64,000 nucleotides of DNA, from positions 7,502,001 to 7,566,000 of the forward strand of contig OZ004615.1 in assembly GCA_963924565.1 (NCBI GenBank). Reading direction: 5' to 3'. Shown here piece by piece: positions 17,801-26,800 of the stretch (within the stretch, counting starts at the first letter, position 1; the number at the start of each line of letters is the position of its first letter). A program made the position numbers and the translations under genes. The notes below the pieces were generated by a model, which made no database searches, was not told where the DNA came from, and saw only the letters and a list, made by a program, of their open reading frames with translations. Source of the stretch: Ascidiella aspersa. Taxonomy: Eukaryota.

Positions 17801-20800
17801 TCACTGTGCAGGGCGGCCAATCGGCGACGCTCTCGGCCGAAGTCCGTGGCATTCCGAACCCTCTGATAACCTGGTTCCACAACGGCCACGTAATCCGAAG
17901 CGACGAAAACTACCGCTACGTGAAACAGGGAGAAAAGCACCAGCTGGTGGTTCCCCGAGCGAGCGTGAACGATCAGGGCATCATCGGGTGCAAAGCGACA
18001 AATGTGTTGGGCGAATCCACCAGCACTGCTAAGTTAACAGTGCTCGAGTCCATTTTAGAAGGAATCTCGTCGGACTCGGAGCTCAGCGTTGCGCTGTTCG
18101 ACGATTCCTCAATGAACTTAACGGTTGTGGACAGTGTTGAAAGATCTAGAGACTTAACTGCCAGCGAGCTGAACGTGACAGGCGACAGTAAAGTTTCCTT
18201 TGCTGGCTCGTTGTTGATGCAGAACAAAACTTACTCCGAGGAGTTTAGCTTCTCCAGCTTGCCACTCCCGGAACAAAGCGACGGCGTTATTTCCGAGATG
18301 GACGCGTACGGCAATATTTCCGATCAGACCTTGTCCAGTCAACGCGAATCGTTTATCAGCCAAGTTGACGCAAGAACTGATCAAACAGCGAAAAGGTCGA
18401 TTCTAAAGAAGAAGAAGCGCGTCCACATAGAAAAGCGCAGCTTCGGTTCAATGACCGAGAATCTAGTGGAAGAGTCGGCATCTTTGGTCCAGCAAAGCTG
18501 GACCGAGGAAGTGCGGAAAATCATCCGAGAGGAAATGGAGCTGAGAGACGAAAGGAGCCGAGAACTGCTGATAAAAGAATCGAAACAAGAGGATAACACT
18601 CATGCCGATGGAGTTGAATCACTTCCGGTCGCCCAACCGCCGAAATTTGCCAAGGCCATTTCCGACTGTGAAGTATTGGCGGGCGAAACTGCCCACTTTG
18701 TCTACATCCTCGACGCCAGCGCACCGGCGAAGGTGACCTGGCTACGTAACGGTGCCGAAATCGCGCTTTCCCGTGACCCTGCAAACACAACCGACGACGT
18801 GTTTTCGGCGACCGACGGAAACCTGGGGATCATATGCGACGATGAAGCCGGGTGCCTGGTGATCAGTGAAACCGGCCCGAAACACAGCGGGGTCTACGCT
18901 TGCTTCGCTTCCAACGAACATGGCAGCACAAAATGCAGCGGCCGGCTTGTTGTACACGGCGCTCGGAAGCAGCCAAACCTTTCCACGCGAGACGCAGGGA
19001 CATACATAGCAGAGGAGAGCAACGCACAGACTCAAGTGTCAACCCTAGTGGACCAGGAGTCTCAAACCCGAGAGAGTCGCTTGCTGATTGAGGAAGATCA
19101 AATTGAGGTCGCGTTTAAGCAGCTTGAATACGCCGAAAAGTCGCGAGCCGTTTCCGAAGTTATCATACCCTCTTCCTCTCCTCCGCCGCCGAGAGATCCT
19201 CCAACTGATAGTGATCTCAGGAGGAGGAGGAGGAAAAAGAAGAAGAGGCGTGATGGCGACTCGGTCGAACAGAACGTGGGAAGACTGGACGACTTCGAGA
19301 CCGGTGAAGGTTTGAAATGGAGCACCGCTTTAGCGAAGGCAGATTGTCATTGGCATGACTCACCTTGTATAGAAAAAGTAAATTACTCAGCTTTAACGAG
19401 TAAGATCACAGAGGTCTTGGCTCAAATTGCAATGCATTATAACCCAGCAAGAGACAGCACAGCACAGCACAAAATGAGTATAGTTTGTTATGAAAGCACT
19501 TTACCACCATAACCTATACTTGCACTTTACCACCATAACCTATACGTTACAGCACTGATGCCTGACTGTGAAATTAACAACATTCAGGTCTCCAAACAAA
19601 AGGTTAGCTTTACGGCTTAAGCATGTTACCACTTTCTAAGTTAACACAACTCACTTTTATTTCAGTACAATGGAATTGTGTCTAGAGCACTGATTGCTTT
19701 GGCGGTAGTGGCTAGCCTAAAATGGCACCACGTTAAGGTTAGATTTTACCACGCGACGCGCACATATAGGTTACTATAGTTTCGGCTGTTGACTGCACGA
19801 ACCGCACCGGCACACTTCTGATACTTCAGGTGTTGTCACATGTTATAAGGCACCATTTGCACCTTTCTGTGATGCGAGAAAAGCCTACTTTGAGAACTGC
19901 ACTGATGCACCGCTTCGCATTGATACTGTAATTGTTTGATATAAACCGCGTTTCGTTTAAAAGCCCTTCTAACCATCGATAAATTGCTTTACAGAGGAAA
20001 AGCTTCAGCCGCCTGCATTCACTCGCAAGCTGACTGTGACCAAAGCCCGACCGGGCCAAAAGGTTTGATCTCACATTGCATATGCTTATATTTTTGCTAA
20101 AGTTATCCAATGGTTTTTTTGTACCACATCCTGATTACATTATGTTATATTACATTTGGCTATTGGTAAAAACATATAATCTTATAGAAGTATGTCGTAA
20201 TATAAAGATAAAACAATGCGCTTCATTTTTTTGTTATCCTAGATCAAAATAGAGACAGCTTGTTAAATGTTTTGAAATCAAAATGTTTTGTTTTTTAGGC
20301 CAAGCTTTCGTGCACACTGACTGGTTCATCCCCGGTCCAAGTGCAATGGTCACGTGACGATACACCGCTAGAGCATGACGAAACTCGCTACGTCATGAGC
20401 ACCAACGAAGCGGAACCGTTCCTTGAAGTGCGCGAAGTTTCGTTCAGGTAAGCTGCGATAAGTTTCGGCTACAATTTAAAGTAATTTAACTCGACAAGTT
20501 AAAATTCATAATTCCAATTCGTACAAAGAAAGCCTAAAAATTAATAAATGTTTTCTGTACAAAAATGTAGCAAATTTAAATTTATTTTGATGTATTTAGC
20601 GACGCTGGAGAATACACAGTGACCGCTACAAATGTGGCCGGCAGCGCCTCCTGCACAGCGTCTCTAGTGGTCGAAGGTCGGTGATGACGAAATCGACAGT
20701 GACGTCACAGCCACGAGCACGCGTTTTGATTTCTATGTTCGGTCCCAGGAATGCTGCCTTGCGTTGCCGCTTGCTGTTTTACAAAGGGCCTTCGACCTTT

Positions 20801-23800
20801 CGCAAGAAAGTGTCGTGTTTAAAGTTTTTCTTCGCCGCATGCGTCGAATGTTGATTTTCTGCGCAACTGACACTGCTTTTTGTTTGCTCACATTTCACTT
20901 TCTAGCGCAAAGATCGATTTTGTTTATTGGTAAAATGGTGTTATTTGTTTTTTTTGTCACTGTAAAGCCGACGCACTGTGTTGGACGCTCTTTTTCTTTT
21001 GAATTTTTCTTTATTTTATCAATTTTGTTGTTGCACGACTTTGGTTTTGCGCAATTGCGCTTTTTACCCACGCATGTCGCACTGTGTTTACACGTCAACC
21101 GTTTCTACATAATATATAAATATCTCTATTTTGTCGCAAATACAATGATTCCCAGTTTGGCATGGATTCAGCTGCAATTTAAAGTTATTTAACGCTGGAA
21201 TGCAAAATAACACTTTGAACAGTTGTGATGCTGCACGACACCGTGTTGCTACGTAATTTAGAAAGATGCAAGCCAGTTTATACCTTTGGCTATAGAACGC
21301 CACCTTTCTCTTTTTTTAAAGTGAGGCCTTTTTTCTCTATACCTTCTTCTTTTCTTACTTTATTTTCTTCTCTTCTTTTTCACTCTTAGGCGTCGCTCCG
21401 AGCTTTGTGCAAAAGCCGGAAGGTGGCGTGAGAGAGGGCGGCAAGGAGTTCTTACTTGGAGCAGTTATTACTGGGCAACCGGAACCAGATGTGTACTGGT
21501 TTCACAACGTAAGTTCTTTGTTGGCGTTTCAAACTTGCGCAGCCGATATTGGCAATCAAAACCCACTTCAATGTTGGTAGTTAACTACTTAAAGTTCTAG
21601 ACATAAAATCAATAGGTTAAGCCGAATAAAATAAGATTTATTTTCATCCTTTGGCAGAATAACATCCTATTTTGCGGGTTCATCCTAATCGAACTATTTA
21701 CAAATTCTTTTCTCAAATACTCTACTCAACCAAACATTATTTCATACCATTAACCGCCGTTGACGATGTACAGCATTTATACTACAAAAAATGAAATTTC
21801 TCACATGACTTAGCCTCACAACTGCAAAATTATTGCTTAGAGACGAATTAATACCGAAGCATTTCTCTAGGTCTAAAAGCTTAATTAAAATCGCAAGAGA
21901 AGGTAATTTTATAAAATTAATCATACCGTACAACAAGCCTACTTTGAAGCTAAATTAAATATTACGAAAACCTGTAAATAATTTGTCAAAAATGTTTCAG
22001 GATAAACCTTTTGGTATACGATAAAGTGAGCAGGTTAAATTACCAAACATTTTAATTGTCATTCCAACCATCATCAGTGGCTATATTTTTTATTTATTTT
22101 GACACAACTATACTTCTGTAACATTGTAGGTTTACCACAGTAAATCACAATTTTGTCTATATAGTCTTAACGATAAAACAGTGGATTATCATTATTTTAC
22201 GACTTCCCTCGTCCCTTCTGTCGGATCCAACGTCTAAGAGGTATTGTAAAACAGTGGTGGGCCTTTGTTGCATAAACCGTCTGAGTTCCATATCCAGCGA
22301 CCCTCGCATCCTAGCACGGTTTCACCAACACGGCGCGGCACGCGAGCACGCAGCCAGACGTCGTCGCAAATCCAACAGCGTATCGCGCGTTGCGTAACCG
22401 AAGCGTCACCATCTGCGCGGGGCCCTAGTCATGTCGTCACCCCGACGAGGTGCTGACGAAACGATGCGGCATGCTAAAGGCAGCTGACCTAACCCGCGTG
22501 CGTCTTTCGCACCTCCATGCCTCTATATAAGCGACTGATCCATCGCTTTCCTTCATTCGAACAGGGTCAGCCGTTAGCGGAGGACAACAGGAGAAGCCTA
22601 GTCCACGAGGAGGGCGGAGTGTACGGCCTTGAGATTACCGGGCTTACTGTGGAAGACAACGGGGAATACGAGTGCGTGGCCGAGAACGAGGCCGGAGAAG
22701 CGAGATGCAGCGTTAGCTTGAACGTCGAAGGTACACCACCGAAGAATATTAGATGCTAGCTCGGTTGGGTGGGGCGTGCTAGGTTGGGAAAAATAAATGA
22801 TAATAAGTGATGCAGAAGTATTAGGACAATTCCTAAACAATTGTAGGAAAGATACCTAAAAATTGAAATATCTGCAACGAAGTCAATTTCTTGGCTTAGA
22901 GGTTTAAGATGCGCTTGTTGGTAGTTGGTTACTATTCGAAAGAAAAGGCGTCTTCTGTTTTTTTAATATGGTATTAAAGTTGATAATCCTGTGCTTCAAT
23001 TTTAATAGGCCGCTTACCACAATTTTTTGTTTTCTTTAGTCCAAGTTCGATTAGAATTCCCTAAGGTTTTACGTTTAGTTTAGTTTTAGAACGATCTATT
23101 GAGTAAAACATAGCAAATTGAGTAAGTATATAGAGCCCGAAATTAGCAATCAGGATTTAGCCCGCATAGAGTGTATACACCTTTCCTAAAAACTGTTCAG
23201 AAGTGTCTTTGGTTGACGCTTTACGCCAATCTGCTTCGATGGATTCCCAACATCAATCGACATCGGCCGCGGCAGGAATCGAACCACCAACCTTCGTGAC
23301 CGAACCGCGCGGCGAAACCGCAGCAACAGGTAAGGCCTACTGAGCTTACTTAAATGATAAAACATTCCATTAGTAACTATAACGATGATATGTTTCTGAT
23401 ACAATGCAGATAGTGAAAAAAACATTTTTGTAAAACTAAGATGTAGAATTATAATACCACTTAATTGTAATTGTAAACACCGGCAATTTTACTCCAGGCG
23501 ATAGCGTGACGTTTACAGCGGTCGTAGCCGGATCTCCGCAGCCCAAGGTTCAATGGAACAAGGGTAAATGGCGACAGATCAAGAGCTACGGACGCTTCAA
23601 GATCGCGCAGGACGAGGCCACCAACACCCACACGCTCACCATCTCGGTGCTTGACATCCCCGATACTGGAATGTACAGGTCAGGCACCAGAGTGCAATCA
23701 ATAGGCAGTGTTGTGTATCACGCTATAAGCTCAGGCTGATAGTTTATCTATAGAGGCTATAAGCAACTAGGTCGGCTTCAACGACTTGACATGTTTACTA

Positions 23801-26800
23801 TTCCCTAACTATTCTCTTAGTCTTTTAGGCACTTTCAGTTAATCTCCACGTCCATTATTATTTTTTATGCATTGACAATTCAATGGTGAATTTTGTTGTG
23901 TTTAGATGCATCGCGAGAAATAGCGGAGGTGAGGCTTCGTCTCAGTTCGATCTCAATGTGGTCGACGACTACGTGACTGAAAAAATGGACCAGACAGAAT
24001 TGAAAAAGTAAGTGCAACTAACTGATATCCAATAAATCTGTTTGCCAATGCCGATCACAAATTTCAAAATGGTTCGCCTTAAATAACCCTACTCTGAACC
24101 CAGCTAATTCTCCCCTTAAAAACACATTCGCAGAGCACCGGTGAAGGAAAAACAAGTCAGTGACATCGAAACTATCAGCGAGCTGCTGAAGGAAGTGGAC
24201 CCCAAAGAGTACGAAAAATACGCCCGGCATTACGGAATCACCGACTACAGACAACTGCTTTCCCATCTGGAGGAGATGCAGGCTCAGGAAGAGCCGGTAA
24301 ATAATCACCCTTGGCCCTACAGGATAATGTGTATTTTGCAGTGTCCAGCAAACCGTACTTCACATAAGAAAATATATTGATTTTCTATTGTTAAATTGTA
24401 ATGAAGATTATTAAACCGCTTCAAAGAGTCAAAGTCTTGATCCTAACGCTTTACGATTTCAGAAATCGGTTGAGACCGAAGCCGCTGAAGTTCACGACCT
24501 TTACAAGCTGATGACCAGGAGCCTGTCCATCTCGGAGCCGGTCAAGGTTCTCCGCGACCTCACCAACGTCAGCGCCCCGATGGGTGAGGAGGCGCGCTTT
24601 GTCACCGAGCTCCAGATCAACGTTCCAGGAATCGAAGTCAACTGGTTAGTCTAAAAGACGACATTGTTTAAAACAAACTGCTGGTATACACGTAAAAATT
24701 TAATGCGAGTATTTAAGGCCAGGTACGAGTTTAAACACAATTGGGATACTAATACCCGAGTAGCCTGATACAAATGTGACCGAGTAACAAACGTACCGTT
24801 AGTGCTTGCAATTGTTTTATAAACACTGTGCAAATTTGTACTATTGCAAGCGTTAATTGGCTTTTGTAGAAAAGGAATTTGTACAGCTATCTTTCTAAGT
24901 TGGTCAAATAACCGATGTAAACAAATGCCACACAACCGATTCGAGTAGCCTAAGTAATATCCCCTACCTTTGTACAATACACTACTGCTTCGTATGTCTC
25001 CAGGTACCGGGGAAACGAGCGCCTGCACGACTGCAGCAAGTTTGAGCTCGTGCACGACGGCACCATGTACCAGCTAGTGATCAAGAACATGACAGAGGGG
25101 GACGTCGGCGAATACCGCGTTGTTGCCGGAGCACACTGCTCCACAGCCAGCCTAACGCTGTCAGCACCACAAGGTAAAGCCCTTATTGAAGTATTTGCGT
25201 GTTAAATCATTAAATTCGAATTCAGATGTGATTAAGTATACACAAGAAAATAAATCGAGCAACAGGTTTTCATTTTTTGGCCCTCGGTGCTTTTAACGAA
25301 TTTTATCGGTGCTACGAATTATCGATAAATAACAATAGTGTAACATCGAAAAGGCGCCTAAAAATAAAAAAAAAACTTGGTGTTGCGCTTTTTTAAGCAA
25401 AAGCAGCCGAGTCGATTCCTCCCACTGAGGTAAAACCAAAGACAGTGGACAAAGACGAGTCGCCGGTCGTTGCAGTTAAGACCGCAGCCCAGGAGGCAAC
25501 TCAGTCGCTGCCAAAACGCAAACCAGTGATAATGCGGGCTAAGGTGGTCCCGGCCGCCACTACCACCACATCGAAGGACGTTCTTGTGACTTCTAACAAA
25601 TTAAAAACGGTTGAGAAAACAACGCTAGAGCATCTCCATGTGCTTGCTGGCGATGGCTCGGAGCCTCAGCCAACCACTTCGAAAGCGGCTAAAGAACCCA
25701 TTTCGAAACCCGAGGAGGCTGCTGCTGTTGATAAAGATACGTCGACTGCGGTAAAACCAGTGGCTGTAGAGACAGAAGTGGATGGGGCAAAACCGAGGAG
25801 CAGTCCAGAAGCTGCCAAACCTAGTTTGCGTGAGTGTGACACGGTCACCAGTCTCACCCAATACACCACTTGTCATCTCAGCCCTAAACAATTCGGCGTA
25901 AATTATTCTTACCAAACACTTAATCAAACAAACCAAAAATCAGTCTTATTTTTTTAATGGTTTCACTTACCCATCTCCATATTTCATTGCCGCTCCTCGA
26001 CCACAGTCAAAGTATAATCGCTTCTCTTTTTCTTTCATCCGCAGTGAAATTTACAAAGCCGCTGGAGTCGCAGCGCGTCCAGGAGGGCCAGGACGCGACC
26101 TTTGACTGCGAGGTCAACCTCAAGGAGGCAAAGGTCACCTGGCTCAAGGGCGAAGGCAAGTTGCGCAAGTCGCGCAAGTACGAAATCTCGTCGAGCGACG
26201 TAGACAGCGCACCGGGAGCCCGCCATCAGCTGGTCATCAAGGACATGCGACCCGATGACGAGTGCTCAGTGTCGGCGCGCGCTTCGCACGACGAGTACGG
26301 CGATGACGTCACATCGGCCAAGCTGGAATTTTCACCGGAAGGTTGGTCTTTGCGATTTGACTGCGAGATATTAATTTCACAGGTTAAGCGTTTTAGAGAA
26401 ATCAGTGGTCATGCACTGATGTATGATTTACAACACTACAATTACTTTTATTTTTCTTTCCTCAACCCTAAAATTCATCGAATCATCACTCATTTTTTCA
26501 CGATTCTTTCAATACACAAAATCTCGCGCTAAACCGTTAAAACACGAGCAGTCTTCGTGAAGCCCCTTCCCGCCGACCGGAGCATTCACGAGGGCGAGGT
26601 CGTGACACTCGAGTGTGAGCTCACGAACCCGGATCACGACGTGATCTGGCTCAAGGGCGACCGGCGCATCTACCCCGGCTCCAAGTACACCATGGCGCGC
26701 AAGGGCTCGCTTCTTAGCTTGACCATCCACGAGCCGGTTAAGATGGACGAGGCGGTGTACTCGTGCGCCTTAAAGCACAGTCCAATGCGCAGATCCTCTT

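Follow-up and report, generated by a model that had tools for sequence, protein, structure and literature searches.

A unique GC-rich block in an intron upstream of the N2A-like region of a titin-like gene: a candidate muscle cis-regulatory module in an ascidian-type genome

We analysed a window of 64 kb of DNA (the whole stretch under study) whose region of interest is the interior of a titin-like gene on the + strand. The genome searched comprises 308 Mb in 75 contigs, and the analyses of the locus covered either the window or 264 kb around it. Our data point to the 3' end of one intron, the GC-rich block 22200-22564, as a predicted intronic muscle cis-regulatory module of the titin gene, a reading to which we assign a probability of about 0.4. 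Under this model, E-boxes of the Mrf type, T-box sites of the Tbx6 type and cAMP response element (CRE) half-sites would constitute a muscle-factor cluster in unique, GC-rich non-coding DNA, and the block would help to drive or tune titin transcription in muscle. The adjoining exon 22565-22730, spliced to exon 21390-21508, is a normal coding exon of the gene's interior, and the TATA/initiator (Inr) pair that borders the block on its 3' side would have arisen by chance or, at the most, would serve as a start site that is minor or restricted to certain conditions. We infer this regulatory activity from the DNA itself rather than from functional data. An initial annotation had read the same block as an internal promoter that makes a C-terminal titin starting at N2A, and we weigh that proposal below.

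The block differs from its surroundings in composition. The GC profile runs at 0.57-0.63 within it versus 0.27-0.35 in the remainder of the intron, and introns of the examined region of the window have about 30-35% GC. Of the GC-rich segments in the window, which number roughly 80, almost all are open reading frames (ORFs), that is, exons, and the block is the clear exception; it is also the largest among 16 GC-rich segments without an open frame in the 264 kb. The observed/expected ratio of CpG is about 1.2 across the whole window, and a CpG-island label therefore does not discriminate the block. In the DNA of other individuals the block is polymorphic at 22281, 22419, 22475 and 22539 (two single-nucleotide polymorphisms, SNPs, and two single-base indels). 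These changes spare the TATA, Inr, E-box, CRE and T-box motifs, and 22539 T>C retains a branch-point-like CTGAY.

Several other identities of the block were rejected. DNA and translated searches found it as a single copy in the genome, which excludes an origin from a repeat or transposon, and DNA contigs from other individuals, in which the block is contiguous with its flanks, exclude an assembly artefact. A hidden exon or a gene on the opposite strand was rejected as well: the ORFs of the block do not exceed 63 amino acids, Pfam gave no match, and GC by codon position is flat (0.57/0.58/0.55, versus 0.66/0.40/0.71 in the adjoining exon). All X4 reads, which are stranded raw reads, derive from + strand RNA on this stretch. 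Moreover, neither strand of the block folds better than shuffles (z-scores of -0.12 and +1.24), and neither a tRNA nor an Rfam match at E up to 1 was found (20000-25000 searched), which rejects a structured RNA. A decayed duplicate of a neighbouring immunoglobulin (Ig) exon was likewise rejected, as blastn and tblastn of the block against the window gave nothing.

The motif content of the block favours our reading. Mrf/E-box, Tbx6 and CRE sites are the reported motif set marking the promoters of muscle terminal genes in Ciona (PMC6589888), and all three classes are present in the cluster 22397-22494, placed 30-130 nt upstream of the TATA-Inr pair. A stretch of 90 nt that combines at least two MyoD-type E-boxes, three CRE halves and one T-box core is found only a single time in the 264 kb, namely here. 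The joint motif counts of the block were reached in only 5 of 3000 shuffles of its sequence and in 1.5% of the GC-rich 365-nt windows of the locus. Titin introns about 56-58 kb upstream, outside the window, contain another two GC-rich blocks that are unique and of non-coding appearance. One of them (G000:C9:7465900-7466400) contains two T-box cores, one E-box and three CRE halves in 45 nt and has no TATA, which hints at intronic modules as a class and not at a promoter.

Other observations weigh against a muscle module. All motif thresholds were chosen after the site had been seen, and single motif classes are weak alone (P 0.06-0.13 in block shuffles). The 400 nt upstream of the start codons of muscle-type actin genes, in which their promoters possibly lie, have 25-40% GC and are poor in motifs; because these regions are AT-rich, neither GC-richness nor this motif density is shown to typify muscle regulatory DNA in this genome. 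Over the 24 codons that precede exon 22565-22730, no significant similarity to P0001, the single ortholog available, was seen (shuffle P 0.53). In haplotype X1, the block carries 2 SNPs and 1 indel per 365 nt versus 11 SNPs per 757 nt of flanking intron, an SNP density as low as in exons. This deficit favours a module and is suggestive only, the difference being non-significant.

The muscle-type actin genes used in this comparison (ETALVCDNGSGLVKSGF) are clustered on one contig (G000:C4:30261122-30273663) and stand head-to-head on another (C1:15135783-15142008). A separate tandem cluster (C7:22147452-22246021) holds about nine intronless actin genes of the cytoplasmic type, each following an acceptor-like site.

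The exons on both sides of the block belong to the gene. The X3 contigs carry GT..AG joints and therefore behave as RNA, and their joints fix the local gene model as exons 20299-20447, 20600-20676, 21390-21508, 22565-22730, 23201-23329, 23498-23678, 23906-24007, 24134-24296, 24463-24644 and 25004-25173, with the next exon beginning at 25398. AG/GT borders are present at exons 22565-22730 and 23201-23329. When the exons were searched individually against databases, and not as a joined spliced protein, exons 21390-21508 and 22565-22730 proved to be the two parts of one I-set Ig, so that the intron hosting the block interrupts this domain between profile positions 37 and 38. No paralog of exon 22565-22730 was found in the genome, and a search of representative proteins returned giant multi-Ig proteins only.

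Further downstream, exon 24134-24296 matches PDB entry 7nip, 'Isoform 11 of Titin' (E 2.1e-11), and the tri-helix bundles of MyBP-C, and 24135-24296 matches the Pfam family THB (PF18362) at E 1.7e-9. I-set matches in Pfam at 23500-23676 and 25005-25172 flank this exon. Judged by these matches, the region downstream of the block is N2A-like, with an Ig, a tri-helix bundle and more Ig domains.

RNA data demonstrate that exon 22565-22730 is spliced on both sides. A single X3 unitig of depth 12.1 carries the joint 21508>22565, the exon and the joint 22730>23201. X3 consists of contigs with rough depths, in which neither a tip of 10 nt nor a spliced leader of 16 nt would show, and X4 amounts to 32 reads over 5.9 kb. 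At donor 20676, the upstream X3 depth of 25.6 divides into 16.1 spliced and 9.4 read-through, and at donor 21508 the depth of 16.1 divides into 12.1 spliced and 4.5 unspliced. The spliced depth of 12.1 thus approximates 16.1 minus 4.5, which leaves about 0-1, on these rough contig depths, for a second input at 22555. No starts or loose ends are listed at 22540-22570 or at the 22565 and 23201 acceptors, in X3 contigs that are blind to 10-nt tips and spliced leaders and among the 32 X4 reads. Across the block, X3 depth stays at the intron level (0.75-3.5), the X3 contigs leave about 22420-22535 uncovered, and alternative joints were not seen. In X4, 21179-23148 is empty of reads and 23149-24133 has two or three, far too few to count. 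Promoter activity at 22555 is therefore not supported by RNA, and a minor input is compatible with the rough contig depths.

The next acceptor shows a separate feature. An X3 contig of depth 5.2 covers the intron 22731-23200, running from 22743 into the next exon (22743-23228), and a downstream contig (depth 22.3, 1925 nt) has its end precisely at the 23201 acceptor, where the inputs sum to 17.3 (12.1 + 5.2). The excess of 22.3 over 17.3 could be coverage noise or could reflect additional entry there, for instance by a spliced leader.

The TATA/Inr pair resembles a core promoter, with CA at 22554-22555 as the putative start dinucleotide. Transcription start site sequencing (TSS-seq) in Ciona places TATA at -32 to -29 and starts at CA or TA, with a TATA in about 15% of promoters and alternative promoters in about 4.5% of genes (PMC4691747), and the TATA position and CA start seen here agree with these statistics. 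The pattern TATAWAWR-N20-26-TCAKTY has one match in the window on both strands, with 0.10 expected and at least one match in 8 of 100 shuffles. Genome-wide, 4790 matches stand against 5640 for the reversed control, i.e. there is no enrichment, and the TATA-Inr match alone is therefore weak evidence. The downstream promoter element (DPE), a candidate for which follows the pair, has no positional preference in Ciona (PMC4691747). A gene family elsewhere in the genome has a likely genuine TATATAAG/TCATTC promoter, and the DNA around it has 36% GC. Because both this family and the actin upstream regions are AT-rich, GC-richness is no demonstrated promoter mark in this genome. The copies of the family (G000:C1:3276726-3348925; L006-L008) are dispersed or in tandem and share a near-identical TATATAAG...TCATTC core promoter; in each, the leader measures about 95 nt and the first exon (ATGATGAAATCAACAATG followed by GTGAGT) is tiny, all in AT-rich DNA.

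The sequence features named in the initial annotation were recovered where it had placed them. The GC profile confirms its GC-rich patch in intron 21509-22564; TATATAAG at 22524 does lie 31 nt before the Inr-like TCA(22555)TTC; the E-boxes, CRE half-sites and T-box sites are at their positions, and their description as the motif trio of ascidian muscle promoters agrees with PMC6589888. The three-codon upstream open reading frame (uORF) at 22705 is the only earlier AUG, the next AUG, at 23239, is in frame just before an Ig, and the order of I-set Ig, THB/7nip-matching exon and further Ig domains upholds the N2A identity. The annotation overlooked that its intron splits one I-set domain, that a DPE-like element follows the Inr, and that an in-frame ATG lies at 22517. 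Its central claim, an internal promoter producing a titin that begins at N2A, was borne out for the sequence features, the motif set and N2A and is not supported for promoter activity, given the splicing and the balance of depths in RNA. In particular, the predicted coverage step or extra input at 22565 did not appear, as the X3 depths balance without a second source.

On that proposal, a TATA/Inr promoter at about 22555 would yield an untranslated first exon 22555-22730 that contains the uORF and is spliced to 23201, and ATG 23239 would open a Z-disc-less titin whose first residues lie shortly before the N2A Ig and tri-helix bundle, an isoform like Cronos but more proximal. The geometry is canonical (TATA at -31, CA at +1), the pair is the only one in the window and is followed by a DPE-like GGACA at +28, the motif cluster occupies -60 to -160, a placement shared with the compact muscle promoters of ascidians, and ATG 23239 is the first long in-frame start of an mRNA leading into confirmed N2A. 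A truncated N-terminal isoform, described below, ends about 1.4 kb upstream, which makes complementary N- and C-terminal products conceivable, and the start of vertebrate Cronos, too, is intronic and closely precedes an internal exon (PMC4720518). The X4 reads, few downstream (23149-24133) and none in exons 21390-21508 and 22565-22730, lean the same way in numbers far too small to count. We nevertheless consider this promoter unlikely, for the X3 unitig splices through the exon with a depth of about 0-1 to spare, starts and loose ends are absent from the X3 contigs at 22540-22565, the TATA-Inr pattern is unenriched, and the likely promoters of the family on C1 and the actin upstream regions are AT-rich. 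In addition, the last 53 I-set profile positions, half an Ig, would become a 5' leader, ATG 23239 has T at -3, the ortholog lacks significant upstream similarity, and the linker exon that bears the Met (23201-23329) found no relative when used as a query.

A different use of the block in transcripts, as a 5' exon extension (with a Cronos-type start above ATG 22517, or through an acceptor at 22532), a cassette exon or the host of a small RNA, strikes us as highly improbable. From 22493 into the exon no stop interrupts the frame, and the ATG that it contains at 22517 could be used only if transcription began further upstream, as in the geometry of Cronos, whose initiator Met lies inside the intron 7-12 codons upstream of the exon (PMC4720518). 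The one orthologous ORF, P0001, from a contig of 6695 nt and with 63-67% identity to the ORF of the window, is also open upstream of the exon, with 23 additional codons that begin at an ATG. By our estimate, however, about one of six cases should show an opening of about 23 codons even in an AT-rich intron, and a product from 22517 would start with a partial Ig. The stretch of about 22420-22535 that is bare of RNA contigs and alternative joints, and the block's lack of coding periodicity, of an Rfam match (E up to 1) and of a fold signal, speak against such uses. In P0001, Tyr-Lys (TAY AAR) lies 36 nt from the acceptor, compared with 39 nt here, within an upstream similarity that is non-significant overall. 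P0001 as a query returned nothing new, and its cluster has a single member.

The block may also be a functionless relic, that is, GC-rich DNA that was once inserted or once exonic and whose decay towards intron composition is incomplete, with motifs and TATA/Inr pair present by coincidence; we regard this as a serious, if tentative, possibility. Expression over the block that does not exceed the intron level, the non-significant conservation signal, single motif classes within chance, a TATA-Inr pattern without genome-wide enrichment and the existence of other unique GC-rich non-coding blocks in the locus all fit a relic. It is harder to reconcile with the failure to detect a source sequence in the genome or the window, the absence of residual coding periodicity, an X1 SNP density as low as that of exons, and a combined cluster that is unique in 264 kb and adjoins the only TATA-Inr pair of the window.

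Upstream of the block, the gene has an alternative 3' end that yields a truncated titin stopping one Ig before N2A, a well-supported conclusion. The X3 contig 20648-21327 has a depth of 9.4, which together with the spliced depth of 16.1 makes up the upstream 25.6, i.e. about 37% read-through of donor 20676. X4 covers 20588-21178 at a depth of 4-6, with 12 reads at 20998 (above the upstream exons) and zero beyond 21178, and the truncated isoform predominates in the X4 sample. This isoform is a better-supported novelty of the stretch than the internal promoter, and because it is supported, the internal-promoter idea is still worth 5'-end mapping. The terminal extension also holds a perfect CRE (TGACGTCA) at 20700-20707, and a heterozygous deletion of 6 nt was seen at 20998.

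Table 1. Coordinates of the features discussed, in window positions unless a genome contig is given.
Feature	Position	Strand	Remarks
GC-rich non-coding block	22200..22564	.	365 nt, GC 0.57, unique, 3' end of intron 21509-22564
Motif cluster	22397..22494	.	3 CRE half-sites, 2 MyoD-type E-boxes, 1 T-box core
E-boxes	22410 (CATCTG), 22481 (CAGCTG)		Motif scan
CRE half-sites	22404, 22435, 22454		Motif scan
T-box cores	22448, 22510		Motif scan; second T-box-like site spans 22507-22514
TATA-box consensus TATATAAG	22524..22531	+	P = 0.02 within block by shuffles
Inr-like TCATTC	22553..22558	+	Putative +1 is the A at 22555; first T of TATA lies 31 nt before it
DPE-like GGACA	22582..22586	+	Fits RGWYV at +28..+32 of putative start; post hoc
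ATG	22517..22519	+	In frame with exon, 16 codons upstream, overlaps TATA; ORF 22517-22759
Three-codon uORF (ATG CAG CGT TAG)	22705..22716	+	Only ATG in 22555-22730
ATG	23239	+	Titin frame; only ATG in 23201-23260; T at -3, G at +4
Exon	21390..21508	+	First part of I-set Ig, profile positions 1-37; X3 joints 20674>21388, 21508>22565
Intron	21509..22564	+	1056 nt, phase 0, GT..AG; X3 joint skips all 1056 nt
Exon	22565..22730	+	Second part of same Ig, I-set positions 38-90; Pfam E 1.4e-11; spliced joints on both sides
Exon	23201..23329	+	Linker and start of next Ig; joint 22728>23199 (cut +2)
Exon	24134..24296	+	Tri-helix bundle (titin N2A unique-sequence type); PDB 7nip, MyBP-C chains, Pfam THB PF18362
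Alternative terminal extension	20677..21178	+	Read-through of donor 20676/GT; Gly-Arg then TGA TGA, 3' untranslated region of about 0.5 kb
Upstream GC-rich block 1	G000:C9:7465900-7466400 (L013:3900-4360)		Titin intron; T-box/E-box/CRE cluster, no TATA
Upstream GC-rich block 2	G000:C9:7467000-7467900 (L013:5000-5900)		Titin intron; unique, non-coding-looking

The premise of the initial annotation that this DNA comes from an ascidian-type tunicate is sustained by genes for the spliced leader. The sequence of the Ciona-type 16-nt leader served as a lead only; the evidence is the structure of the arrays. Followed by GT, this sequence has 884 matches in the genome versus 55 for the control, and many of the matches stand in large tandem arrays with a period of 584 bp in both orientations (G000:C3:5218799-5451030), presumably of spliced-leader RNA genes. 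Since the copies stand in tandem arrays, the genome is that of an ascidian-type tunicate with spliced-leader trans-splicing.

If a second start were real, the tunicate titin would be functionally split: the read-supported 3' end at about 21178 gives a product of the Z-disc and of the proximal I-band, and a start at about 22555, or one feeding the 23201 acceptor, would give a Z-disc-less N2A product, together a pair of the Cronos/Novex-3 type that predates vertebrates and has a different position. We hold this scheme to be doubtful. Were the promoter true, the two-product logic of titin, with a Novex-3-like N-terminal and a Cronos-like C-terminal product, would be older than vertebrates and differently placed. 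Flies and worms have separate N- and C-terminal titin-like genes, which such a logic would echo. Ascidian electroporation would then make the function of a Z-disc-less titin easy to test.

Hybrid first/internal exons are internal exons that double as first exons of alternative transcripts. In the promoter model, exon 22565-22730 would resemble them, being internal in the full-length mRNA and first (with 10 additional nt) in a shorter one; it differs from them in that its use as a first exon was not observed here. The closest parallel within titin is Cronos (Zou et al. 2015, PMC4720518), with which the site shares an intronic position directly upstream of an internal Ig exon, an in-frame Met nearby and a Z-disc-less C-terminal isoform that would complement a truncated N-terminal one (Novex-3 in vertebrates; here the read-through end at 20677 to about 21178). 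However, Cronos lies in the I-band's distal part and is supported by 5' RACE, an RNA-seq pile-up, H3K4me3, DNase and genetic data (PMC4720518), whereas the site described here lies shortly before N2A and cuts an Ig; its Met would be supplied by a downstream exon that follows an untranslated exon of partial Ig, and the RNA lends it no support.

For the favoured reading, an intronic muscle cis-regulatory module, the nearest known systems are the muscle cis-regulatory modules of Ciona (PMC6589888). Those modules lie upstream of the 5' end of the gene and are validated by reporters or ChIP, whereas the block is deep inside its gene and is predicted from sequence, and its T-box sites are core or near matches and its CRE sites half-sites. 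What the block has in common with them is the presence of the same three motif classes within about 100 nt, near a TATA and within a structural gene of muscle in an ascidian-type tunicate. As no more than an intronic enhancer, it would be a useful but ordinary element, a small and clean candidate for driving a giant muscle gene from within.

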